This document shows positions 3,965-62,508 of a DNA stretch of 64,000 nt, in pieces (the first letter of the stretch is position 1; the number at the start of each line of letters is the position of its first letter). The position numbers and the translations under genes are program-made. Source of the DNA: Oculina patagonica (lineage: Eukaryota); NCBI RefSeq assembly GCF_052425735.1, contig NC_135763.1, positions 31,000,001 through 31,064,000 on the forward strand, written 5' to 3'. The notes under the pieces are model-generated. The model had not been told where the DNA came from. It saw nothing but the letters and a program-made list of their open reading frames with translations, and did no database searches.

Positions 3965-4053
3965 TATCTTTTTTTTAATAATAAAAAGAAACAGAGTATC
4001 ATAGGGTTTCCTTTAAATTATAGAATAAAGGTTTGTTCAATCGCGATCCTCCA

Positions 4054-19626
<15,573 letters not shown>

Positions 19627-20089
19627 AACTGAAAATCAAGTAGATGAGCGTTAAGTAATAGACAGCTGTTGTGTTAAAGGGCAAAAAGTAACCTGCAGAC
19701 GTTGCAAATCTTAATCAGTCTTACACTCTTACTTTTTTATGAACACTGAGATTTCATAGAAATGACATTATCACAACACACAATAAAATGAGTATGCAAC
19801 CATATTTGTTGTTGTAAGACGTCCTCAATAATACTACAGTACAAGAAAAACAAAAGTAAATAAACAGTCGCGAAGTAAACTTACAAAATCTACATAAAAC
19901 GATAAGAGGGCACTAGCTTACTTATGGACCTAAGCCAGTGGCTGTTAGACGATATCAACTCGTTCCTCAGGCCAAATTTATTAAATATTTGGGCACGGTT
20001 GCGGTTAAGGATGGATGGGTGGTTGCACTGACAGACTAGCATCCCGGTCATCCGGAGACCATTCATTACCATACATTCAAGATATCAAT

Positions 20090-23000
20090 TTATTTCATAC
20101 ATAGTGAGATTTACAGTTAGAATTGATCGGAAATTCTCGCAGCCAATGACAACGGCGAAACGACTTTCTCACACGTGAGAAACCCGTTTCGTCCAATCAG
20201 AAAGCGGCTGTCAAAACGCATCAACATTTTCAATGAACGTGGTAGCTTTGTCGATGGCGCTAGCTTTTTCACTGCTTGAAAGTTATCGCTTGCAGGGTTT
20301 TTGGCCTTTCGCAGTACATTTGTGGACGGTTTAAAACGTTCTCATTAACAACTATGGCTGAATTTTCTGGCAGTAGGTTTAAACCATTAAGTAAACCCAT
20401 CGAAGAATATATTACTGAGGAGGAAAACGAAAACACTCGAGCAAAAACGCAGCGGGATGTGAATCTGCTTTCTACATTTTTGCTGGAGAAAAACGAACAA
20501 AGAAAAATTGAAGAAATCCAACTAGAAGAGCTCAGCCGTTACCTTGGTGAATTCATTCTTAGTGCGAAAATAAAAGATGGCCAAGACTATGAACCATCGA
20601 GCCTTCGAGGGTTGTTCTCAAGTTTTAACCGGTATTTAAGAGAACGCAAATACTCAGCGAGTATTATCGAAGACACTGTGTTTGACCAAGCAAGAAAATG
20701 TCTGAAAGCTCGCAGGAAACAACTGAAAAAAAAAAAGGCAAAGGGAACAAACCCAACGCAGCCGAAGCTTTGACTGATGTGGAGGAAAACATTCTTTTCG
20801 AAAAGAATTTACTGGGAATCTCAAATGCCAAAGCTTTGCTAAACACAGTCTGGCTTTTCAATTCGGTGCATTTTGGTTTGAGAGGCTGTAAAGAACATCG
20901 GCAGAAGACTTGGGGCGACGTGGAACTTCACATGGAAGCCGACGGAACTGAATACCTAGAGTATTCTGAACGTCAAACGAAAACTAGAACGGGAGCTGAA
21001 CCTCGAAATGTCAGAACTGTTAAACCGAAGGCTTTCGCAGCACCAAACGGTCCACCTGAAAGAGACCAGTTGCCGTTTACAAAATTTATTCCAAAAAGAG
21101 ACCTGACGCGATGAACAAACCTGATGCGCCATTCTATCTCGGAATAAATTACACAAAAAGTCCTTCGTCGAATAAACTGTGGTTTAAATCAAGTGCAATG
21201 GGTCAGAACAAATTGAATAGTCTGATGAAAACCATGGCGGAAAAAGGAGGCCTTTCAAGTAAACGACTGACTAAACACAGCGCTCGAAAACGCATGGTAC
21301 AAAAACTAAACGACAGCGACATACCTCCCAGTCACATTATGCAGCTCTCAGGCCACAAAAATGTCCAAAGCATAAAACAGTTATAGCCACATTTCCCAAA
21401 AAAACATGTCAAGGATACTGAGTGCGACCTCGACTGAACCTCCTCATCTACATTTAATAAGTTGGTAAAAAGTCCATACGGATATCACACCAACGTCTAA
21501 AAATAAGTAAAAATACAATATGTACATATATAATAACTGAAAAATTCTAAATTAATTCTAAAAATCTAAAAATTCTAAAAATCTAAAAATTCTAAAATTA
21601 TATGGGTAAACTACTAAATTAATAAAAATGCTCGCGCAGTCCAGACTGGAAGGACGTAAGAGAGCCGGACTCCTGCAAAAGTTCATCGAGTATTGGCCAC
21701 AGATAGTGAAGCTGAAACTCTGTCTTGTAGTTTTCAGTCGTCAAGCAGTCCAACATTGCCTGGAGCAAGTTTATTTAGTGGAGCCGTGTTTCATGGAGGA
21801 CACTTTAACATTTCTATAAACACAGTAAGTCAAACCCCATTTACACGCGCAAAAAAATCGGCACGGCACGGCAAATTTTTGGCACCGTGACCAAACCATT
21901 TTGGCACGGCACTGCCCATTTACACGACCAAAACAAGAAGGTTCTCTCCTGCTAGGCACGGTACCAATTTTTATCTTGGCACCCCTACTTTCCATCGGTT
22001 TCCTTGCCGAGAAATGGCAGAAAAATGTTTTGCTGTGATAGTTCATCGTGCTTTCAGTGCAAAACGCGAATTTTATCGGAAAGGAACGAGTTGTCGACCA
22101 TTCAACATAATGAAGAGTGTTCAGGGGCAAAACAAATCGACATCTGAAAGGAGTTGACGAAATCAGAAGAAGAAGATTGAAAAGTCTGAAAAATAAATGG
22201 CTCTTTGCAGTGATGGTGGAAGTGGCTGACTTACGGTGATTTTTTTAGAGCGGGAGCTTTCTCTTATCTTCTGCCTCGGTGGCATTCTTATCCCCCAGAA
22301 CTTCTCTTTTTGTACTCTTTTCGCCGACCACGTGACTAAAAGTCTCTTGGGGCGAGAATGACGCAGTGGCCGCCATTTTCGTAGAAACAACGCATGCGTC
22401 ACACTTGTCTTCGGCACGGTGCCTCTATTTACCCGTGCCGAGACTACCTCCTGGAGGTAGTCTCGGCACCCCTAAAAAATTGGGCACTGGTGCCACATTT
22501 TTTTTGGGACCGGTACGTTTACACGTCGATAATTGGGAGTGCCGTGCCCAAAAATTGTCAGCACGGTGCCAAAAATTTGCCGTGCCGTGCCGATTTTTTT
22601 GCGCGTGTAAATGGGGTTTGAATCAGTCGCCTAATGCGCACACCTTCAAGCGTGTTAAACGTATTTTAGATTCTTCGGATGAAGATAGCCCTCCCTTGCA
22701 ATAACACGGTTACATATTCTCAGTTCTTATTTCTATATTTCATTTTTGTACTTGTTGAGTGAAAAACTCTTGATATTCGATTTCTTATTTTATTAGAACA
22801 ATTTTAAGACACGAGAATAATCTCATGAAATGTCGTTTTTCAACGATTTTGTTGTTATTATCATTTTGCCCGGAACTTTGCAAATTAGAGTAATTTCATT
22901 TTGTGTGCTTGTACCGAGGTATTATAACAATAAAAAATAACAGTTCAGCGTGGAAAAATCTCTGTATGTATAAAATAAACAAATTACAGCATGAAAAGTG

Positions 23001-23138
23001 CTTTGTACGGTGTTTACGCAATCGTTGTTTTGAAACAAAAATCTCACTCGTTCGCTCTCGCTCACTCGTTCGATTTCTGATACGTCAACAACTCGTGCGT
23101 ATACACCGTACGCGCGCACTTTCCATGAAGTAATCTAT
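20090..23138 (+). mobile_element. Crypton-type tyrosine-recombinase transposon, copy A (full-length ends, frameshifted, two nested insertions)
   Basis: Broken ORFs 20276-21386 encode a DUF3504-like YR (YEPSSL, FGLRG, ERQTKTRTG, HSARK, SGHKN). The empty site in the gene 2 paralog (gatatcaATgactcg, ~43626-43640) defines the ends. ~150-bp hairpin at 22983-23134. Confidence 0.85.
21832..22619. mobile_element. MITE (PIF/Harbinger-like TIRs) nested in Crypton A
   Basis: ~60-bp TIR aaaccccatttacacgcgcaaaaaaatcggcacggcacggcaaatttttggcaccgtg and its reverse complement; absent from copies B and C. Confidence 0.8.
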
Positions 23139-23582
23139 ATGACTCGCCTACCCGAATTGAAAATCATTCAAATTCAGTCACCAATAAACGCATCAAGGCA
23201 CTTCAACAAGGGCGAATTTCTGGCGTTCCAAATGCATTGGCGGATATCAACCCACTTGCGGGTTTTCCCCACTCACTGAACATTAGGCTTTAATTTTGTT
23301 TCCATCGTGCTTAGTGATTCATTCCATTTTTAGAATTTCCGAACTGAATGATCACGAACAACGCAAATTTTGTAACATTTACTATTTACTGGCGGTAACA
23401 TGCCTAAATTTGATCGAAAATATTCAACATGTATGCAGTAGTGTAATTTGTGTTCGGGAAAATACTACAGGGCTCGCTTCTTGAGAAAACAACTTTTAAA
23501 TTTAAACATAAAACTCACAACAATCCTTTTCCTATTTACAGACAAAGTGAACGAAGCTCAAGGCTAACACTTTGCGGCTCGA

Positions 23583-24358
23583 TATAATCGCATTGCGTAA
23601 AAGTTTGCTTCTTTGATAATGTAATAAGTATTGGTAATCAAATGGTGACGAGTGAAATTAGGAAATAATTTCACGCGCATTTTGTCAAAATGCTTAAAAT
23701 TTCCTGAGCCTTTAGGCGAGGGAAATTACTAGCATTTTAACAAAATGCAAGTGAAATTATTTCCTAATTTCACGATTATACCATTTGATTACATTTTAAT
23801 ATCATAGGTGACAAATTACGCTTGCAATCGTAGGTTTTTGACTGGTTTATTGCATCGCGAACTCCGAGCTTTGAAAAGTTGAAAGCATACATTTTGCTCA
23901 AGTTCGCAATTTGTTTAGTCTTTGAAGAAAACCTTTTAGAGATTCCTTTTTGCTGTTGACAAAAAGTTTCAAAGATGAATCAAGTGCCAATTATATCTCA
24001 CATAATGACCGTAGTTCGTCTTGAATGAACTGAAAACGGTGCCCGTCGCTTAAAAATCCGGTCGATGCTATTTATGTAATTGGCTTAAGTCTAGAAGTCG
24101 TTTTGACGTTTTGAAATATAAAATATCATCAAAAGTTTTATTACATGGCCATGGCTAGCTGGCTAAGATGAAATTCAAGCGAAAATGTACAAAGTTTAAG
24201 CTTTAAAACATCTTTTATTACGGACGCCATCTTGCCGCTAATCACGTTGCCATGGCAATTTTATAATTTCACATGTTAAATTATAAATTAACGCTAAAAT
24301 TTCGCGCCAAAATTAAGGAGTAATTTGTCACCTATGATTATTAAAACTGAAATCTACC
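23583..24358. mobile_element. Non-autonomous element with a ~155-bp left hairpin and internal inverted repeats
   Basis: Hairpin 23635-23790 (gtaatcaaatggt...gtgaaattaggaaataatttcac / gtgaaattatttcctaatttcac...accatttgattac). IR atcataggtgacaaattac (~23801) / gtaatttgtcacctatgat (~24320). Absent at the paralogous site ~44105-44120. Confidence 0.65.
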
Positions 24359-27300
24359 AAGACTCGATCTCTTCTTGATTCTACGTTCCCAATACAATTG
24401 ATTTTTACGCTTTTGACATAGATAAAATCATGAATTAAATATAGATTACTTCATGGAAAGTGCGCGCGTACGGTGTTTACGCACGAGTTGTTGACGTATC
24501 AGAAATCTCACTCGTTCGCTCCGCTCACTCGTTCGATTTCTGATACAAAACAACGAGTTCGTAAACACCGTACAGAGCACTTTCCATGCTGTAATTTGTT
24601 TATTTTATAAATACAGAGATTTTTCCACGCTGAACTGTTTTTTTTTTATTGCTATAATACCCTGGTACAAGCACACAAAATGAAAGTACGCTAATTTACA
24701 AAATGATAATAACAACAAAATCGTTGAAAAAAGACATTTCATGAGATTATTCTCGTGTCTTAAAATTGTTCTAATTGGATAAGAAATCGAATATCAAGAG
24801 TTTTTCACTCAACAAGTACAAGAATGAAATATAGAAATAAGAACTAAGAATACGTAACCGTGCTATTGCAAGGGAGAGCTATCTTCATCCGAAGAATCTA
24901 AAATACGTTTAACACGCTTGAAGGTGTGCTTTCTTGTTGCTGAGTACGCATTAGGCGACTGACTTACTGTGTTTATAGAAATGTTAAAGTGTCCTCCATG
25001 AAACAGGGCTCCGCTAAATACACTTGCTCCAGGCAATGTTGGACTGCTTGACGACTGAAAACTACAAGACAGAGTTTCAGCTTCACTCTCTGTAGCCAAT
25101 GCTCGATGAACTTTTGGAGAAGATTCAGTCGAGGTCGCACTCAGTATCCTTGACATGTTTTTTTGCTGTTGTTGGGAAATGTGGCTATAATTGTTAATGC
25201 TTTGGACATTTTTGTGGCCTGAGAGCTGCATAATGTGACTGGGAGGTATGTCGCTGTCGTTTAGTTTTTGTACCATGCGTTTTCGAGCGCTGTGATTAGT
25301 CAGTCGTTTACTTGAAAGGCCTCCTTTTTCCGCCATGGTTTTCATCAGACTATTCAATTTGTTCTGACCCATTGCACTTGATTTAAACCACAGTTTTTTC
25401 GACGAAGGACTTTTTGTGTAATTTATTCCGAGATAGAATGGCGCATCAGGTTTATTCATCGCGTCAGGTCTCTTTTCGGAATAAATTTTGTAAACGGCAA
25501 CTGGATCTCTTTCAGGTGGACCGTTTGGTGCTGCGAAAGCCTTCGGTTTAACAGTTCTGACATTTCGAGGTTCAGCTCCCGTTCTAGTTTTCGTTTGACG
25601 TTCAGAATACTCTAGGTATTCAGTTCCGTCGGCTTCCATGTGAAGTTCCACGTCGCCCCAAGTCATCTGCCGATGTTCTTCACAGCCTCTCAAACCAAAA
25701 TGCACCGAATTGAAAAGCCAGAGTGTGTTTAGCAAAGCTTCAGCATTTGAGATTCCCAGTAAATTCTTTTCGAAAAGAATGTTTTCTTCCACATCAGTCA
25801 AAGCTTCGGCTGCGTTGGGTTTGTTCCCTTTGCCATCTTTTTTCAGTTGTTTACTGCGAGCTTCCAGACATTTTCTTGCTTGATCAAACATAGTGTCTTC
25901 GATAATACTCGCTGAGTACTTGCGTTCTCTTAAATACCGGTTAAAACTTGAGAACAACCCTCGAAGGCTCGATGGTTCATAGTCTTGGCCATCTTTTCTT
26001 TTCACACTAAGAATGAATTCACTAAGGTAACGGTTGAGCTCTTCTGGTCGTTTTTCTCCAGCAGAAATGTAGAAAGCAGATTCACATCCCGCTGCGTTTT
26101 CGCTCGAGTGTTTTTGTCCTCCTGCTCTGTAATATATTCTTCGATGGGTTTACTTAATGGTTTAAACCTACTGCCATAAGATTCAGCCATAGTTGTTAAT
26201 GAGAACGTTTTAAACCGTCCACAAATGTACTGCGAAAGGCCAAAAACTTTCAATTATAAATTAACGCTAAAATTTCGCGCCAAAATTAAGGAGTAATTTG
26301 TCACCTATGATTATTAAAACTGAAATCTACCAAGACTCGATCTCTTCTTGATTCTACGTTCCCAATACAATTGATTTTTACGCTTTTGACATAGATAAAA
26401 TCATGAATTAAATATAGATTACTTCATGGAAAGTGCGCGCGTACGGTGTTTACGCACGAGTTGTTGACGTATCAGAAATCTCACTCGTTCGCTCCGCTCA
26501 CTCGTTCGATTTCTGATACAAAACAACGAGTTCGTAAACACCGTACAGAGCACTTTCCATGCTGTAATTTGTTTATTTTATAAATACAGAGATTTTTCCA
26601 CGCTGAACTGTTTTTTTTTTTATTGCTATAATACCCTGGTACAAGCACACAAAATGAAAGTACGCTAATTTACAAAATGATAATAACAACAAAATCGTTG
26701 AAAAAAGACATTTCATGAGATTATTCTCGTGTCTTAAAATTGTTCTAATTGGATAAGAAATCAAATATCAAGAGTTTTTCACTCAACAAGTACAAGAATG
26801 AAATATAGAAATAAGAACTAAGAATACGTAACCGTGCTATTGCAAGGGAGAGCTATCTTCATCCGAAGAATCTAAAATACGTTTAACACGCTTGAAGGTG
26901 TGCTTTCTTGTTGCTGAGTACGCATTAGGCGACTGACTTACTGTGTTTATAGAAATGTTAAAGTGTCCTCCATGAAACAGGGCTCCGCTAAATACACTTG
27001 CTCCAGGCAATGTTGGACTGCTTGACGACTGAAAACTACAAGACAGAGTTTCAGCTTCACTCTCTGTAGCCAATGCTCGATGAACTTTTGGAGAAGATTC
27101 AGTCGAGGTCGCACTCAGTATCCTTGACATGTTTTTTTGCTGTTGTTGGGAAATGTGGCTATAATTGTTAATGCTTTGGACATTTTTGTGGCCTGAGAGC
27201 TGCATAATGTGACTGGGAGGTATGTCGCTGTCGTTTAGTTTTTGTACCATGCGTTTTCGAGCGCTGTGATTAGTCAGTCGTTTACTTGAAAGGCCTCCTT

Positions 27301-28226
27301 TTTTCCGCCATGGTTTTCATCAGACTATTCAATTTGTTCTGACCCATTGCACTTGATTTAAACCACAGTTTTTTCGACGAAGGACTTTTTGTGTAATTTA
27401 TTCCGAGATAGAATGGCGCATCAGGTTTATTCATCGCGTCAGGTCTCTTTTCGGAATAAATTTTGTAAACGGCAACTGGATCTCTTTCAGGTGGACCGTT
27501 TGGTGCTGCGAAAGCCTTCGGTTTAACAGTTCTGACATTTCGAGGTTCAGCTCCCGTTCTAGTTTTCGTTTGACGTTCAGAATACTCTAGGTATTCAGTT
27601 CCGTCGGCTTCCATGTGAAGTTCCACGTCGCCCCAAGTCATCTGCCGATGTTCTTCACAGCCTCTCAAACCAAAATGCACCGAATTGAAAAGCCAGAGTG
27701 TGTTTAGCAAAGCTTCAGCATTTGAGATTCCCAGTAAATTCTTTTCGAAAAGAATGTTTTCTTCCACATCAGTCAAAGCTTCGGCTGCGTTGGGTTTGTT
27801 CCCTTTGCCATCTTTTTTCAGTTGTTTACTGCGAGCTTCCAGACATTTTCTTGCTTGATCAAACATAGTGTCTTCGATAATACTCGCTGAGTACTTGCGT
27901 TCTCTTAAATACCGGTTAAAACTTGAGAACAACCCTCGAAGGCTCGATGGTTCATAGTCTTGGCCATCTTTTCTTTTCACACTAAGAATGAATTCACTAA
28001 GGTAACGGTTGAGCTCTTCTGGTCGTTTTTCTCCAGCAGAAATGTAGAAAGCAGATTCACATCCCGCTGCGTTTTCGCTCGAGTGTTTTTGTCCTCCTGC
28101 TCTGTAATATATTCTTCGATGGGTTTACTTAATGGTTTAAACCTACTGCCACAAGATTCAGCCATAGTTGTTAATGAGAACGTTTTACACCGTCCACAAA
28201 TGTACTGCGAAAGGCCAAAAACTTTC
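24279..28226 (+). repeat. Direct tandem duplication, ~1.97-kb unit (24279-26251 and 26252-28226)
   Basis: aattataaattaacgctaaaat recurs at 24279 and 26252. Each unit holds ~160 bp of flank plus most of the Crypton and differs only by a few SNPs and homopolymer lengths. Confidence 0.9.
24441..26251 (-). mobile_element. Crypton copy B (5'-truncated); ORF 24863-26005 retains the tyrosine recombinase catalytic residues
   Basis: R (GLRG), K (TKT), HxxR (NHSAR), H (SGH) and Y (INNY) are all present. A short deletion near 26040-26050 separates the N-terminal part from the main frame. Confidence 0.85.
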
Positions 28227-28442
28227 AAGCAGTGAAAAAGCTAGCGCCATCGACAAAGCTACCACGTTCGCTCCACGTTCATTGAAAATGTTGATGCGTT
28301 TTGACAGCCGCTTTCTGATTGGACGAAACGGGTTTCTCACGTGTGAGAAAGTCGTTTCGCCGTTGTCATTGGCTGCGAGAATTTCCGAACCGTGTTTTTA
28401 ACAGATCAATTCTAACTGTAAATCTCAGTATGTATGAAATGA
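26414..28442 (-). mobile_element. Crypton copy C (both ends present, frameshifted)
   Basis: Near-identical to B, with an extra T in a homopolymer at ~27300 splitting ORFs 27282-27980 and 26837-27250. Its end gtatgaaatga matches the left end of copy A. Confidence 0.85.
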
Positions 28443-28662
28443 TGTAGTTTCCTTCTATTATAAAAGATGGCAAGAATCTAATTCAGTGGAACTTAACAAA
28501 AGAAAACAATTATTCATCTCAAGTCACTCTGGCGCATCTACCGTAAATTTAGATTTTAGTTATGTCAGAGAATTCTGGTTATGCATGCACTGTGAATTAC
28601 ATTGTTCGCGAAAAACGTGATTCTTTTTCGAAAAACGCTGCGACAAAACGAAGTTTGAAGAC

Positions 28663-28758
28663 GTATTCGTATTCTCGGTATTGGACTGAAACACGTTTGC
28701 AATGAAGCTCTAAATGACATGAAGCTCTTTTTAATGATGTTCCCCGCATTAGCCTGTT

Positions 28759-28791
<33 letters not shown>

Positions 28792-28805
28792 CGAGAATAC
28801 GAATA
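28663..28805. mobile_element. Short MITE-like inverted repeat; paralogous copy at ~44433-44576
   Basis: tattcgtattctcggtattggactg ... cagtccaataccgagaatacgaata. Confidence 0.6.
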
Positions 28806-29702
28806 TGGTCTGCTTCACAATGGAGTCCAAATCTGGGGTGGATAACACCTGATAAAAAATTTAACGGAGAGTCTGTCTTCGGTCTGGCGCCTGCGCTACT
28901 TGCAGCTTAATTACAGCAAACCCGAGTTACGCTACTGCTTGCAGTCTAGAAATAACTGAAAACTGTTAGCCGAGATCGTGAAATCTTCAGGTTTAACTGT
29001 GGTTAACATTTAGCCGAGAAATGTTAAAGTTTTAACTAACAACCAAGAAATCTATTACCAGTGGCAAGTCAGATAGATTATCCAATTCCTACCTTCGTTT
29101 AGCAATGCAAGTGAAAGAGAGAAAGGAGAAATGTTCGTGAAACTGACTGTGTCAAAATTTAAATTGCCAGAATATTATCGTCAAGTGAACGCCATTTAGT
29201 TGGAATACAATAGGTAATTATGCTAAATCACGTTCTTATTCGTTTTTACACCTGCATAATCAAACGAAAGAAGGATCTGCAGGCTATTTGGCTTAAAACC
29301 ATCCCAAGACGCAAATCTTATCTTAGGTTCTGATCATTTACCAAATCCACCACTCTAGGTTATTATTTCTTACAGAACTGGCTTGCAGTTTAGGAAAACA
29401 ATAGCACTCTTGATCGAGCAAGCTATAACTCCCGCATGTAGCAAAGAAGCGTTTTCTGGACAGTTATTTCCATAATTACATGGCATCAATCCAGCTACAA
29501 ATTACAATAGCAGCAAAAGATGGAAGTTAAGATGTTGAATCAAGCTAAACGAAAACAGTTTTGTAATCTGCAGGACTGAAACCGAGCTCTAACGATGCCA
29601 GAAATCCATTATAAGCAATTTGCAACTCAATAAAATAATGAACATTTGATTGCAAAATGCCACTTGCTTACATCATAATGCATACTTACTGTTAGAGGTA
29701 GT

Positions 29703-29860
29703 ATACTTACTAATTCCTGATCGACTACCTGTCTTAAATCATCAAACGATTTAACGATCAGACAACACGAAAACAGCACAGAGACGAATGTTTTATAATA
29801 CTGACGATTTCTCTTAAGCGATTTTCAGACTGAGAATAATGAATATGCAAACATGAAATA
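29703..29860 (-). promoter_or_regulatory. Probable non-coding first exon / promoter region of gene 1 (paralogous sites at ~45480-45630 and ~63811-63980)
   Basis: Each ATG exon begins just after an acceptor AG (19629-30, 43174-75, 62529-30). Homologous donors GTAAGTAT/GTGAGTAT occur at 29710, 45487 and 63818 inside a block conserved among the three paralogs. The TSS cannot be located from sequence alone. Confidence 0.45.
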
Positions 29861-30324
29861 GTAAACAATTGTTACAATATTGTCACCGTCAAAAGCAATC
29901 GTTCTTCCTGCGCAAAAAATATCGAAAATGTAGCCGCTTTAAATTAAGTGGGAAAACATTCCAGTTTTGTAATGACCATTATAACCCATTTTTGGAAAAC
30001 GTTTGATAAAGGGTCGGAGTTAGCATAAATTTTGTATTGCGTGACGCCAACAAAGCTTGTAGCAAAGATTTGCATAGCTTCGAATTCTAGTGTTACTAAT
30101 TACGTTCAAACAAGGAGAACGCGAACGGGTTTTGTTTTGTTTTAACAGTCGAAAAAAGAATATTGATAAAATATTGATACTTTTTAAGAGGCGAGAACAA
30201 CAGGCGCCAACTCGGCGATGATCTAAAGGTTTTCTATGATTTTATTGTGTCAAGAATGAATGAAACCTTTAACTACTTCCTCATCTGGAGTACTATAAAA
30301 AATCCGCTGCATGAATGTTACATC

Positions 30325-30491
30325 TAGCCTGCGTAGCTGGCGCGATTAATGCGGCTCTAGAACAATCGTGGACGAAGCCCGCGTGCGTGAGCGGCAAATC
30401 CTCCCCAATTCCCTCGCGGCTTCACAGCTCGACTTTGCCGTTCGCCGTAAACAAAGCACTCGATCGCGAATCCCGCCAGCTACACAGGCTA
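30325..30491. mobile_element. MITE with TAG...CTA termini and imperfect 9-bp TSD (AcademH-like); paralogous copy at 46415-46578
   Basis: tgttacatc|tagcctgcgtagctggcg ... cgccagctacacaggcta|tgctccatc. Confidence 0.65.
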
Positions 30492-31145
30492 TGCTCCATC
30501 TAAATATATGAGGGGCGCACAAAACAACCCAGAAATGCCACAGTAGTCAATTCAGGCATGCAACGAATACACGGATGACGTCAGTGTTTTCGAAAGCCTC
30601 CGTTTTCGCTGGTTTTCGCTCCGTTTTCGAAATACACTTTAATCCGGATATATTTGAAAACGGAGCTTTCGCCCCGAAAACGGATAAAATTGTCAATAAT
30701 TTCACTGTTCAAAGTAATCCGGATAGATTTGAAAACGAATCACGCATCGGCCCTAGATGAATGGTAGAGCATGCGTACGTTCATTACTCGAACCTGCCCG
30801 CACAAAATTCAAATCAGGGAGTTAAAAAAAAAAAACATTAGGGTTTTCACGAAAGCTTTCTTCGCCTTGATTTGACCGTTGATACCATATTGCATTATAA
30901 GCTCATTTGAGCTGAAACGGGGGGATGGAGCACTCCTATTTATAGCGCGTCTATCAATTCATTTAGTTTTACTCCTTTATGTTCCGGTTCTGGAGGTAAA
31001 AGTAATATTCTAAAATGTGCAATTTAGTTTCTTTAGATTTGATGAGGTTGCTGTCTAATATTCAAGGTTTTGCCAAAAAGTAGTTCTTCATTTCTTGGTA
31101 ATAAGAAATAAAAAGTCCCTAATCAGATACATGTATTAACTATCC

Positions 31146-31373
31146 TTTACAGCGCGGCGCGCCTTACCGTGGCCACCCAACAAACTTTTTTTACAAGTGT
31201 GCTCTCGTAATATTATCAACCGTTTGACGAACACGCTTCCTTGAAAAGTTGAATACGATCAAATAGATACTTGTTACATCGTATTTACCAATAAAACGCA
31301 GTCAATATTACAAGATGACACTTGTAAAAAAAAATTTGTTGGGTAGCCACGGTAAGGTGCGTCGCGCTGTAAA
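31146..31373. mobile_element. MITE downstream of gene 2; paralogous copy at ~48195-48423
   Basis: tttacagcgcggcgcgccttaccgtggccacccaacaaa / tttgttgggtagccacggtaaggtgcgtcgcgctgtaaa. Confidence 0.65.
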
Positions 31374-31481
31374 GGAACACATTATCTTAGCAGTCTTCCA
31401 ACATTGCATTTCTGATTAAAAAGAAACAGACCATCACTTCAGTTTATTTATAGAAAAAGTTTGTTCAATCGCGATCCTCCA

Positions 31482-43171
<11,690 letters not shown>

Positions 43172-46066
43172 AACTGAAAATCAAGTAGATGAGCGTTAAG
43201 TAATAGACAGCTGTTGTGTTAAAGGGCAAAAAGTAAAACTGCAGACGTTGCAAATCTTAATCAGTCTTACACTCTTACTTTTTTTATGAACACCGAGACT
43301 TCATAGAAATGACATTATCACAACACACAATAAAATGAGTATGCAACCATATTTGTTGTTGTAAGACGTCCTCAATAATACTACAGTACAAGAAAAACAA
43401 AAGTAAATAAACAGTCGCGAAGTAAACTTACAAAATCTACATAAAACGATAAGAGGGCACTAGCTTACTTATGGACCTAAGCCAGTGGCTGTTAGACGAT
43501 ATCAACTCGTTCCTCACGGCCAAATCTATTAAATATTTGGGCACGGTTGCGGTTAGGGATGGATGTGTGGTTGCAACAGACTAGCATCCCGGTCATCCGG
43601 AGGCCATTCATTACCATAAATTCAAGATATCAATGACTCGCCTACCCGAATTGAAAATCGTTAAAATTCAGTCGTCAATAAACATATCAAGGCACTTCAA
43701 CAAGGGTGAATTTCTGGCGTCACGGCAGACATGGAACTCTTTGTTCCAAATGCATTGGCGGATATCAACCCACTTGCGGGTTTTCCCCACTCACTGAACA
43801 TTAAGCTTTAATTTTGTTTCCATCGTGCTTAGTGATTCATTCCATTTTTAGAATTTCCGAACTAACTGATCACGAACAACGCAAATTTTGTAACATTTAC
43901 TATATATTTACTGGCGGTAACATGCATTAATTTGATCGAAAATATTCAAAATGCATTTAGTAGTGTAATTTGTGTTCGGGAAAGTACTCTAGGGCTCGCT
44001 TCTTGACAAAACGACTTTTAAATTTGAACGTAAAACTCACAACAATCCTTTTCCTATTTACAGACAAAGTGAACGAAACTCAAGGCTAACACTTTGCGGC
44101 TCGACTCGACTCGACTCGGCAAGACTCGATCTCTTCTTGATTCTACGTTCCCCATACAAAAAATAAATTGCTTCAGTTTTACGCTTTTGACAGATAAACC
44201 ATTATTACTATTATAATAGATGGTTAGAATCAAGTTCAGTGGAACTTAACAAAAAAGTAAACAATTATTCATTATTTTCTAGTCACTCTGGCGCATCTAC
44301 CGTAAATTTAGATTTTAGTCATGTCATTAGCTGTCAGAGGATTCTGGATTTGTATGCACTTTGAATTACAGTGTTCGCAAAAGAATTTGATTATTTTTCG
44401 AAAAACGCTGCGACTTAACGCAGTTTGAAGACGTATTCGTATTCTCGGTATTGGACTGGGACAAGTTTGCAATAAAGCTCTAAATGACATGAAGCTCTTT
44501 TTAATGATATTCCCCCGCCTTAGCCTGTTAGCCTCCATTTCAAGCTAGTTCCAGTCCAATACCGAGAATACGAATATGGTCTGCTTCACGATGGAGTCCA
44601 AATCTGGGGTGGATAACACCTGATAAAAAATTTAACGGAGAGTCTGTCTTCTGTCTGGCGCCTGCGCTACTTGCAGCTTAATAACAGCAAACCCGAGTTA
44701 TGCTACTGCTTGCAGTCTAGAAATAACTGAGAAAAAAAAAACTGTTAGCCGAGATCGTAAAATCTTCAGGTTTAACTGTGGTTAACATTTAGCCGAGAAA
44801 TGTTAAAGTTTCAACTAACAACCGAGAAATCTATTACCAGTGGCAAGTCAGATAGATTATCCAATTCCTACCTTCGTTTAGCAATGCAAGTGAAAGAGAG
44901 AAAGGAGAAATGTTCGTGAAACTGACTGTGTCAAAATTTAAATTGCCAGAATATTATCGTCAAGTGAACGCCATTGTTGGAATACAATAGGTAATTATGC
45001 TAAATCACGTTCTTATTCGTTCTTACCCTTGCATAATCAAACGAAAGAAGGATCTGCAGGCTATTTGGCTTAGAACCATCCCAAGACGCAAATCTTATCT
45101 TAGGTTCTGATCATTTACTAAATCCACCACTCTAGGTTATTATTTCTTACAGAACTGGCTTGCAGTTTAGGAAAACAATAGCACTCTTGACCGAGCAAGC
45201 TATAACTTCCGCATGTAGCAAAGAAGCGTTTTCTGGACAGTTATTTCCATAATAACATGGCATCAATCCAGCTACAAATTACAATAGCAGCAAAAGATGG
45301 AAGTTAAGATGTTGAATCAAGTTAAACGAAAACAGTTTTGTAATCTGCAGGACTGAAACCGAGCTCTAACGATGCCAGAAATCCATTATAAGCAATTTGC
45401 AACTCAATAAAATAATGAACATTTGATTGCAAAATGCCACTTGCTTAACTCATAATGCATACATACTGTTAGAGGTAGTATACTTACTAATTCCTGATCG
45501 ACTACCTGTCTTAAATCATCAAACGATTTAACGATCAGACAACACGAAAACAGCACAGAGACGAATGTTTTATAATACTGACGATTTCTCTTAAGCGATT
45601 TTCAGACTGAGAATAATGAATATGCAAACATGAAGTAGTAAACAATTGTCACAATATTGTCACCGTCAAAAGCAATCGTTCTTCCTGCGCAAAAAATATC
45701 GAAAATGTAGCCGCTTTAAATTAAGTGGGAAAACATTCCAGTTTTGTAATGACCATTATAACCCATTTTTGGAAAACGTTTGATAAAGGGTCGGAGTTAG
45801 CATAAATTTTGTATTGCGTGACGCTAACAATGCTTGTAGCAAAGATTTGCATAGCTTCGAATTCTAGTGTTACTAATTACGTTCAAACAAGGAGAACGCG
45901 AACGGGTTTTGTTTTGTTTTAACAGTCGAAAAAGAATATTGATAAAATATTGATACTTTTTAAGAGGCGAGAACAACAGGCGCCATCTCGGTGATGATCT
46001 AAAGGTTTTCTATGATTTTATTGTGTCAAGAATGAACGAAACCTTTAACTACTTCCTCATCTGTAG

Positions 46067-46380
46067 TACTATTCGCACTGCATAAATTATCGACATCGCA
46101 TATAAGTACTACAAATCATGAATAAATTGACATTGTTCAAGTGCGACGGCGGAGGGAACATACTAAGTGCTATTAAGAGCCAGCTGGTAGTTTTGTTGAA
46201 TATTTTTGGGACTTAGTTATGGGTGTTTATATCGTTTGAGGGTATTATGGATGGTACAATTTCACCTACCCACCCACCCTCCCATTATGTACTTAGTTTG
46301 CACTGCGACTCTTGTCGGGTCGCCGAATTTTATCCCCAATCTTAAATGCGATGCGATGATTGTTGCAGTGCAGAATAGTA
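46067..46380. mobile_element. MITE upstream of gene 2
   Basis: tactattcgcactgca ... tgcagtgcagaatagta; the paralogous site at ~30290 is empty. Confidence 0.7.
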
Positions 46381-48536
46381 TACTATAAAAAATCCGCTGC
46401 ATGAATGTTACATCTAGCCTGCGTAGCTGGCGCGATTAATGCGGCTCTAGAAAAATCGTGGACGAAGCCCGCGTGCGTGAGCGGCGAATCCTCCCCAATT
46501 CCCTCGCAGCTTCGCAGCTCGACTTCGTTCGCCGTAAACAAAGCACTCGATCGCGAATCCCGCCAGCTACACAGGCTATGCTCCATCTAAATATATGAGG
46601 GGCGCACAAAACAACCCAGAAATGCCACAGTAGTCAATTCAGGAATGCAACAAATAGACGGATGACGTCAGTGTTTTCGAAAGCCTCCGTTTTCGCTCCG
46701 TTTTCGAAATCCACATTAATCCGGATATATTTGAAAAGGGAGCTTTCGCCCCGATAACGGATAAAATTTTCAATAATTTCACTGTTGACAGTAATCCGGA
46801 TAGATTTAAAAACGAATCACGCATCGGCCCTAGATGAATGGTAGAGCATGCGTACGTTCATTATTCGCGCCCGTCTGCACAAAATTCAAATCAGGGAGTT
46901 AAAGGTTTTTGTCGACGCCAAGGATAACGTAGATAAAAAAAAACGTTAGGGCTTTTAAAAGCCTCCATTTTCGTCGCCCACAACTTATGCGTTCTCGAAA
47001 AGGTCTATTATTAAATGTCTCCCCTCTGGATTGCGTGTGCCAATGTATGCGTTCAGTAAACAGCTATTTCGAGAAAGGTTGTTGAAAAAAAAAAACACAT
47101 CAAATTGCACGCGACAAGACCGAAAGGTGGTCTGGGGATTCACTGGAATTTTGCATATTGGCCTAGAGAAAATTTACAATTTTGTATTTTTGCACGTGGA
47201 GAATTTGTTTTTCTTCTCAGGAGGCCTATATCTGTAGCTTTACATTTACTGTCGCATGTCTTTGAGTGAGGAAAAATTCTTCTGAACTTCAGAGGGTCTA
47301 AACGTACTTTTTTTCAACATGTCTGAAAAGAAAGAAAACCTGAAAATTGCGCTTATTTTGTTGTTATATCTCATTAGTATTCAACACGTGCATTAGCTCA
47401 ATACGTCTACCCATACTACCTTTAGGGATTGGCTTGTGCAGTTTTGTGCTTTTTTCCGACAACGTTTCTTGAAATAGCTGTATTGTGGACGACAAGCAAA
47501 AACGGATCCACAAATATGAGTTTTCAAAAATGCATACGCATTATTGTGAACGGGACCTCAGTTGACAGCGCTTTTTGATGTTGGTTGTTTTCCTTATTTT
47601 TTTATACTAACAGTCATGATAATTAAATTGATAACAAAAAGTCTAACGTTTGCAAGTCAATAATATTACCTGCTTTGAAAGGGATCTAAGCAAAACACAC
47701 TCTAATTTTTATTTCTTATACAATTTTTACACAATATTTTGTATTTTTTTTATACATTATACGATATTTAAACACGAAGACATGCTATAAAAGGAAGGGT
47801 ACCTTAGGTACATGAGGATCATTTGTCAATGAACCGTCGTAGCTTACAGGCCTCTGTAAAAATAACAACTAAAGTGGAATTTTCACGAAAGCTTTCTCCG
47901 CCTTGATTTGACCGTTGCATACCATATTGCATTATAAGCTCATTTAAACTGAAACGGGGGGATGGAGCACTCCTATTTATAGCGCGTCTTGAGCTTTCCT
48001 ATCAATTCATTTAGTTTTACTCCTTTATGTTCCGTTTCTGGAGGTAAAAGTAATATTCTAAAATGTGCAATTTAGTTTCTTTAGATTTGACGAGGTTGCT
48101 CTCTAATATTCAAGGTTTTACCAAAAAGTAGTTCTTCATTTCCTAGTAATAAGAAATAAAAAGTCCCTAATCAGATACATGTATTAACTATCCTTAACAG
48201 CGCGACGTGCGCATGCCTTACCGAGGCCACCCAACAAACTTGTGCTCTCGTAATATTATCAACTGTTTGACGAACACGCCCTCTTGCAAAGTTGAATACG
48301 ATCAAATAGATACTTGTTACATCGTATTTACCAATAAAACGCAGTGAAACGTTAAATATTACAAGATGACACTTGTAAAAAAAGTTTGTTGGGTAGCCAC
48401 GATAAGGCGCGTCGCGCTGTAAAGGAACATATTATCTTAGCAGTCTTCCAACATTGCATTTCTGATTAAAAAGAAACAGACCATCACTAGGTTTCAGTTT
48501 ATTTATAGAAAAAGCTTGTTCAATCGCGATCCTCCA

Positions 48537-62508
<13,972 letters not shown>

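Follow-up and report, generated by a model that had tools for sequence, protein, structure and literature searches.

A 64,000-nucleotide stretch of the genome of the coral Oculina patagonica (scaffold C6:31,000,001-31,064,000, within a 529-Mb assembly of 1951 contigs; hereafter the window, to which all positions refer unless a scaffold is named) carries three tandemly arranged receptor genes on its minus strand, where, in the direction of transcription, gene 3 comes first and gene 1 last, with gene 2 between them. Each combines an Eph-type ectodomain with a RET/FGFR-like kinase, and Pfam matches together with tblastn searches using an 878-aa guide protein, P0015, outline a layout of ephrin-binding domain, Cys-rich region, FN3 domain, transmembrane (TM) helix and tyrosine kinase. 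Gene 2, whose origin is the subject of this analysis, has a coding span of 31482-43171 (ATG at 43171, stop at 31482; placed by Pfam and spliced contigs). Gene 1, downstream of it, spans 4054-19626 (ATG side 19626, stop side 4054), and gene 3, upstream of it, was traced by tblastn with P0015 from its stop to its ligand-binding exon (48537-60947, a span that excludes exon 1). P0015 was used solely as an exon guide and, in addition, as a proxy for the kinase. Intron positions were derived from spliced contigs of the public run X10, and every intron so placed is of the GT..AG type on the minus strand; in each of the three genes, every exon that can be read has an open frame. The public-read contigs, 100-640 bp in length, came from four runs labelled coral or coral metagenome. 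The window has 37% G+C. Of its six N runs, a single one falls in gene 1 (14117-14827) and the other five fall in gene 2 (37949-39690). A search among protein representatives with the ligand-binding exon returned distant relatives and fragments, at best 61% identical, and no annotated ortholog.

Gene 2 matches the Pfam families Ephrin_lbd, Ephrin_CRD, fn3 and PK_Tyr. Read along the minus strand, exon 1 (43025-43171) encodes a signal peptide and is followed by the ligand-binding and Cys-rich exon, which ends at 42307 in our feature list; the corresponding Pfam matches (Ephrin_lbd, E = 1.2e-16; Ephrin_CRD, E = 1.7e-7) are given for exon 41591-42337 and place the ephrin-binding domain before the Cys-rich region. 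Next come an FN3 exon at about 40331-40678 (Pfam), a Thr/Pro-rich stalk micro-exon at about 37839-37868, which a spliced X10 contig joins to the TM exon (37035-37142, placed by spliced contigs), the kinase exons and a last exon (31482-31553) that spliced contigs place with GT-AG borders. The frame is open from the ATG to the zone of N runs and again from the TM exon to the stop, in exons with GT-AG borders. Pfam detects one FN3 domain in gene 2. Gene 3 has a second, at 56339-57279, and it is the only one of the three genes matched by the second FN3 of P0015, which gives no tblastn match in genes 1 and 2; the homologous place in these two genes is taken up by N runs and at least one Thr/Pro-rich micro-exon. 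The kinase of gene 2 itself carries the motif DFGLAR. Judged by the P0015 proxy, the kinase of genes 1-3 would not be of the Eph class: among solved structures the P0015 kinase is nearest to RET (E = 4e-78) and FGFR1-3, leaving aside a top EGFR entry that aligns in two stretches, and the 60 matches listed include no Eph kinase. Only about 30 residues of the protein follow the kinase, which leaves no room for a SAM domain.

Self-BLAST of the window divides gene 2 into two blocks, each a copy of part of one neighbour. Block B2 (28455-33956, minus strand) comprises the last five exons with their introns and the 3′ flank, and is a copy of gene 3 (block B3, 44208-50994) at 93-96%. Within it, 30844-33987 matches 47880-51023 at 93%, gaps included, and the match continues through the 3′ flank (28455-30826 with 44208-46903, 94-96%). 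Block A2 (34664-44104, minus strand) comprises the kinase N-lobe, juxtamembrane region, TM segment, ectodomain, exon 1 and about 930 bp upstream, and is a copy of gene 1 (block A1, 10873-23582). Gene 2 is collinear with gene 1 from 33219-44104 to 9466-23582 at 89-95%, and the interruptions consist of insertions and N runs only. The reverse comparisons are far weaker: the 3′ part of gene 1 (3982-9466) is only about 80% like B2 and B3, and between the 5′ part of gene 3 and block A the exons alone can be aligned, at 73-87%. No remnant of a gene-1-type 3′ flank was found at gene 2 by self-BLAST. The ectodomain of gene 3 is closest to a paralog at 31.22 Mb on scaffold C6 (86-88%), rather than to genes 1 or 2. 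We considered whether the 3′ part of gene 1 or the 5′ part of gene 3 might be recent imports, which would make the putative parents hybrids themselves, and rejected this: no closer relative of the former exists in the genome, and none of the latter is closer than the 31.22 Mb paralog.

The two halves of gene 2 also agree in age. In noncoding DNA that can be aligned, genes 1 and 3 diverge by about 20% (range about 18-25%). Noncoding substitutions separate A1 from A2 at 254 of 5482 positions (4.63%) and B2 from B3 at 203 of 5068 (4.01%), and the difference between these values, about 4.6% and 4.0%, gives z = 1.58 (about 1.6). The two duplicated halves are thus of equal age.

To locate the transition between the blocks, a three-way MAFFT alignment of 33.05-36.34 kb was segmented on 416 informative substitutions in gap-free context, with the number of segments chosen by the Bayesian information criterion (BIC). 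The best single split falls between 33951 and 33980 (maximum chi-square 204, matched in 0 of 1000 permutations), and BIC favours four segments: 33073-33951 with 113 gene-3-like and 3 gene-1-like sites, 33980-34230 with 10 and 44, 34239-34667 with 34 and 13, and 34685-36165 with 17 and 182, respectively. The gene-1-like second segment corresponds to a low-complexity, microsatellite-rich intron (33957-34217) and extends 13 bp into the next exon. This intron aligns to gene 1 at 87.8% identity with few gaps and to gene 3 at 81% with many; a piece of about 26 bp within it (about 34072-34098) is common to genes 2 and 3 only. In the stretch that follows (34218-34475), exon 34218-34337 and the intron after it up to about 34385 are gene-3-like, and from there on the intron is mixed. 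The exon shares 97.5% identity with gene 3 and 91.7% with gene 1. When a paralog at 27.8 Mb serves as the outgroup, the exon shows 6 gene-1-specific changes and conflicting shared-derived sites, two uniting genes 2 and 3 and two uniting genes 1 and 2. Overwriting of the gene 1 exon by another paralog was rejected, as the genome holds no closer donor.

The final switch from gene-3-like to gene-1-like sequence lies in or beside the most conserved exon (34476-34663), which encodes the kinase hinge and an insert. The longest tracts of exact identity shared by genes 1 and 3 (73, 56 and 29 bp) fall in this exon; the three copies are roughly equidistant in it, and the segmentation puts the switch just beyond, between 34667 and 34685. 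The switch points all coincide with exon borders or fall close to them (33956/33957, about 34230-34239, and 34663/34664), as is expected if the exchange and the ends of heteroduplex were confined to conserved exons. Corresponding exons have the same size in the three genes, those of gene 2 in this region are intact, and the frame is retained across the junction to the stop. Two local features of gene 2 may be added. In exon 32605-32701, genes 1 and 3 share states at 32616, 32637 and 32652, positions at which gene 2 agrees with the outgroup paralog. Across this exon, which lies between gene-3-like introns, gene 2 differs by about 7-8% from both neighbours, and the exon may represent another small conversion. 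The conserved exon 34476-34663 itself carries three letters private to gene 2, at 34485, 34493 and 34634.

These results bear out a preliminary description of the same DNA, which had matched the 3′ introns and flank of gene 2 to gene 3 and everything from about 34700 upward to gene 1, and had noted a patchwork between 33.9 and 34.7 kb with a gene-1-like intron and a gene-3-like ENKVCK..GLEGD exon, now identified with 33957-34217 and 34218-34337. It had proposed a three-way alignment, and the nearest paralog does switch along gene 2 in that alignment. A segment said to be missing from gene 1 is represented by the 18-mer ACAACTCTTGGATTAAGG, which occurs at 33774 and 50811 only, that is, in genes 2 and 3. 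The description had also listed a MITE and a SINE as shared with gene 3; an inverted-repeat element (31143-31376) and a very high-copy repeat (33073-33269) are indeed present in the gene-3-like part, and their assignment to these classes is that reader's own label.

Based on the sequence of the locus, we suggest, with a probability of about three in four, that gene 2 is an anti-Lepore-type hybrid that arose by a single in-register non-allelic homologous exchange between genes 3 and 1. The ancestral locus would have held two old tandem paralogs that differed by about 20%, both on the minus strand and with gene 3 lying upstream of gene 1. Misaligned copies would have undergone one exchange within three conserved kinase exons (33.9-34.7 kb), by meiotic unequal crossover or by homology-driven repair, either of which would leave the same sequence, and a stretch of about 16 kb, reaching from mid-gene 1 to mid-gene 3, would thereby have been duplicated, which would have placed a hybrid between gene 3 and gene 1. 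This hybrid would owe its promoter region, signal peptide, ectodomain, TM segment, juxtamembrane region and kinase N-lobe to gene 1, and its kinase C-lobe, tail, 3′ UTR and downstream flank to gene 3. An open frame would have been kept because the exchange was in register, and the position of the last switch, in the exon with the longest tracts of identity between the parents, points to an exchange driven by homology. The alternation of gene-3-like and gene-1-like sequence over about 700 bp would most simply reflect patchy repair of heteroduplex or one short conversion at about the time of the crossover, both of which fit the data alike. Transposons would have entered gene 1 and the spacer between genes 1 and 2 afterwards. 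We infer that one event produced the hybrid by this mechanism and that gene 2 is functional.

The spacers on either side of gene 2 have a corresponding order. Each runs from the end of block A (23582 in the first, 44104 in the second) through a segment of about 100 bp to the start of block B (28455 and 44208, respectively). The shared order is apparent because related copies of the segment occur in both: the short stretch that separates A2 from B3 (44105-44207, with the segment itself at 44120-44198) has copies at 24358-24426 and 26331-26399 (79% by self-BLAST). The preliminary description had proposed an anti-Lepore-type crossover between genes 3 and 1, and order, halves, spacers, register and age, every sequence-level prediction examined, agree with it.

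An exchange between paralogs need not change copy number, and gene 2 might instead be a duplicate of gene 1 whose 3′ part was overwritten by a long tract of gene 3. Conversion is known to imitate Lepore and anti-Lepore chimeras (PMC4041002), and small-scale mosaicism is present at this locus, in the switch zone, in exon 32605-32701 and in the core of the ligand-binding exon (see below). The converted tract would, however, have to be at least 5.5 kb long, pass through the entire 3′ flank and stop exactly at the gene-1-type upstream end of the neighbouring unit, and the equal divergence of the two halves is what one duplication predicts rather than a duplication followed by a later conversion; we regard this history as improbable. 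Chance placement of breakpoints at equivalent points of the two paralogs, with tandem duplication by end joining or microhomology-mediated template switching, is less credible still. Tandem duplications through replication errors are common, and no direct evidence for one was found here. At the junction, register and frame are kept perfectly and no sequence is inserted or deleted; it lies in the most conserved block of the parents and is surrounded by a conversion-like mosaic. These are the marks of homologous exchange, whereas a non-homologous event would be expected to leave microhomology alone and ends out of register.

An artefact of assembly deserves slightly more weight than either of these histories and is nevertheless, in our view, unlikely. 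If only two genes were real and the assembler had jumped between haplotypes within the kinase exons, so that A1/A2 and B2/B3 were pairs of alleles, the same order of blocks would result. Coral assemblies do retain allelic duplications (PMC10236652), genes 1 and 2 both contain N runs, the public contigs are too short to attest long-range contiguity, and the junction occurs only once in the 529-Mb assembly. Against a false duplication, the copies differ by 4-4.6% in substitutions and by many indels and kilobase-sized transposon differences, compared with a heterozygosity of 1.1-2.3% reported for two other corals (PMC10236652), and the switch is a three-point mosaic with variants private to gene 2 rather than a clean jump. 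Moreover, simple tandem placement of two haplotigs cannot have created the junction, because it lies inside an N-free stretch of 23 kb (14828-37948) that includes the upstream region of gene 1, the spacer, B2 and 3.3 kb of A2. The assembly also resolves the 99.7% identical 2-kb tandem repeat and transposon copies of about 100% identity described below, which suggests that long reads underlie it. Read-derived contigs reproduce the mosaic intron-exon boundary exactly: in runs X1 and X2, a 303-bp contig covers 33958-34260 with 0 differences, as do contigs at 34638-34848 and 35319-35537, stretches in which gene 1 differs at 39, 26 and 3 sites, respectively, and gene 3 at more. X1 and X2 may be the source sample. 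A contig from run X4, which carries another species label, matches the gene 2 intron at 34734-34931 with 1 substitution, as opposed to 21 for gene 1. Spliced contigs from organism B are mostly not specific to gene 2, with the exception of the TM exon, which is matched with 0 differences, versus 4 for gene 1; the gene-2-specific open frame through the mosaic intron (33885-34307) has no near-identical match in the other data.

Several observations weigh against a history as simple as one exchange between two genes that are faithfully represented in the assembly. The divergence between A1 and A2 is uneven, at 1.5-2.3% near the 5′ end, about 6% beside the junction and about 20% in the ligand-binding core, and further exchanges beyond a single one must therefore have occurred. 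Intron 33957-34217 is 12% away from gene 1, compared with an average of 4.6% for the block, which points to a less clean history at the junction; by its sequence, this gene-1-like patch is not a recent conversion, since its divergence from gene 1 exceeds the block average. The public contigs reach gene-2-specific sequence locally, including one switch point, and extend over at most 640 bp of the interval between 28 and 45 kb. The reading frame of gene 2 is readable only outside the N runs and is hidden across them. Finally, the private letters at 34485, 34493 and 34634 are unseen in any contig, and all runs covering these positions have the gene 1/gene 3 letter; they may have been lost through collapse of paralogs in the contigs, in which minority variants are dropped, or may reflect variation between individuals or errors of the assembly.

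The exchange would have changed the protein little. Between the N-lobe exon 35178-35288 and the stop, genes 1 and 3 differ at 12 of 264 residues. At the first four of these positions gene 2 is gene-1-like, at the next five, close to the DFG motif, activation loop and subsequent helix, it is gene-3-like, and of the remaining three one is gene-3-like and two are gene-1-like; two private changes come in addition. The hybrid would thus alter about six residues of the kinase C-lobe, and the functional novelty of the hybrid protein is probably small. Larger differences between the parents lie in the ectodomain, where gene 3 has its second FN3 domain and genes 1 and 2 have at least one Thr/Pro-rich micro-exon. 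The re-pairing of ectodomains with kinase tails that the preliminary description had envisaged accordingly holds at the level of gene structure and is modest at the level of the protein.

The gene 1/gene 2 copy of the duplicated unit contains extra DNA (20090-28454), which is interrupted by the conserved upstream end of gene 1 (23139-23582). This adds 4.9 kb to the first spacer and 3 kb to the region upstream of gene 1, largely as copies of dispersed repeats and a tandem duplication. Upstream of gene 1 lies a composite dispersed repeat (20090-23138) with dozens of copies across the genome at 88-100%. The spacer contains a 1977-bp tandem repeat, whose units (24276-26253 and 26249-28228) are 99.7% alike, and in both units the composite repeat is present in inverted orientation, resulting in a large inverted arrangement around the promoter region of gene 1. 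The 775 bp at 23583-24357 are the part of the first spacer without an explanation. A 1.33-kb element that gene 2 lacks is found at 17887-19217, in intron 1 of gene 1, and inverted at 53150-54481, within one of the introns of gene 3; with at least 40 copies in the genome at 99-100%, out of 606 first-look candidates, it looks like a very recently active transposon. Gene 2 in turn has a very high-copy repeat of about 200 bp in an intron (36252-36456), which is absent at the homologous place of gene 1, and a SINE-like repeat of about 235 bp (37440-37673) with dozens of listed genome copies at 89-95%. The intron of gene 1 between exons 5338-5434 and 9613-9653 (window positions 5494-9466) measures 4.2 kb, as compared with 0.66 kb in genes 2 and 3, and holds an inverted repeat pair (6412-7085 and 8779-9410, 92%).

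The cluster of five N runs in gene 2 lies within block A2, at least 3.3 kb from the switch zone, and occupies the place that corresponds by homology to the N run of gene 1. Its flanks are collinear with gene 1 on the same strand and in the same order: 37800-37948 matches 13906-14054 at 99.3%, 39374-39430 matches 14830-14886 at 98.2%, and self-BLAST matches 39861-40859 to 14881-15903. The islands between the N runs of gene 2 repeat a segment of about 57 bp (TCACACTTACCTACC..), of which gene 1 has one copy, after its N run. Gene 2 may thus hold more copies of whatever unit the N runs conceal, as a result of internal expansion.

The core of the ligand-binding exon (41700-42100 in gene 2, 16820-17230 in gene 1), delimited by the density of differences, stands out from the otherwise similar A blocks. 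Genes 1 and 2 differ by about 18-20% in the core and by about 1.5% in the flanks on both sides. Positive selection was considered as the cause and rejected: dS in the core is 0.45, with a dN of 0.19, compared with a dS of about 0.1 in the flanks of the exon and about 0.05 in introns, so that synonymous divergence, too, is raised about tenfold over the intron level. Because synonymous divergence is raised as well, the core is older sequence rather than the product of fast protein evolution. The assembly contains no donor for it, and the best other paralog, gene 0 (see below), is 84% identical to both cores. Either the core would have come by conversion from a lost or unsampled copy, or the A copies would derive from different old alleles. 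It is conceivable, if doubtful, that A1 and A2 stem from two anciently diverged alleles of gene 1 that were placed in cis by an exchange between homologs, with the core as a peak of long-term balancing selection. If so, receptors with these Eph-type ectodomains would be hyperpolymorphic recognition molecules, for self/non-self or partner recognition, and the array would store alleles as paralogs.

A further member of the array, gene 0, lies to the left of the window (C6:30970001-31000000). Its ligand-binding exon is 70% identical to that of gene 2, and it has two FN3 domains. Eph-type kinase exons (GKIPVRWTAPEA..) are located 9-11 kb farther along the same strand, in place of the RET/FGFR-like kinase of genes 1-3. 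This contrast suggests that, at an older stage, one type of kinase was exchanged for another within the array.

Unequal crossover that forms chimeric tandem genes is a textbook process, and gene 2 is a clean example of it, not a new process. Functional hybrid genes produced in this manner are known from the red/green opsins, CYP11B1/CYP11B2 and plant resistance-gene clusters. These systems share with the present locus in-register exchange in conserved exons, chimeric genes and a change in copy number, and differ from it in the gene families and organisms concerned. The order of upstream parent, hybrid and downstream parent defines the anti-Lepore type, as in the HBB/HBD fusion that lies between intact HBD and HBB, and fixed cases exist in mammals (PMC4041002). 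Like haemoglobin anti-Lepore, gene 2 would descend from a crossover between tandem paralogs that were out of alignment, combines promoter and 5′ part from the downstream gene with 3′ part and flank from the upstream one, and keeps intact frames; the mosaic details have a parallel as well, as those of the dolphin gene were ascribed to additional conversion (PMC4041002). Unlike the haemoglobin genes, the parents here are multi-exon coral receptor kinase genes of 12-15 kb that would have exchanged within kinase exons, and unlike in most mammalian anti-Lepore cases, in which a parent was lost, both still look intact. For phased Acropora genomes, a model of non-allelic homologous recombination has been put forward in which unequal crossing over drives gains of copy number in tandem arrays (PMC12314368). 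That model likewise concerns a coral, tandem arrays and unequal crossing over; misalignment there occurs at flanking transposons and yields copies of whole genes, whereas here it would have occurred gene against gene and yielded a chimera with a junction that is directly legible in the sequence.

In our literature search, no paper was found that joins Eph receptor, coral and tandem duplication, and none that treats this receptor family or locus. The locus is a readable, nearly undisturbed record of a coral receptor kinase array gaining a gene by homologous exchange in conserved kinase exons. Gene conversion has been held to be very rare in coral tandem arrays (PMC10236652); the present locus has an exchange junction and several conversion-like patches. 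Its junction sequences could serve as diagnostic markers for genotyping copy number across colonies. Cnidarian Eph receptors fall into one clade by their ligand-binding domain and three by their kinase, two of these specific to anthozoans (PMC6485061). The receptors described here resemble them in the succession of ephrin-binding domain, Cys-rich region, FN3, TM segment and tyrosine kinase, and depart from them in a kinase that is RET/FGFR-like by proxy, in having no SAM domain and, for genes 1 and 2, in giving no match to a second FN3. Exchange within an array would yield just such discordance between the ligand-binding and kinase trees of cnidarian Eph receptors (PMC6485061), for which it would provide a concrete mechanism.

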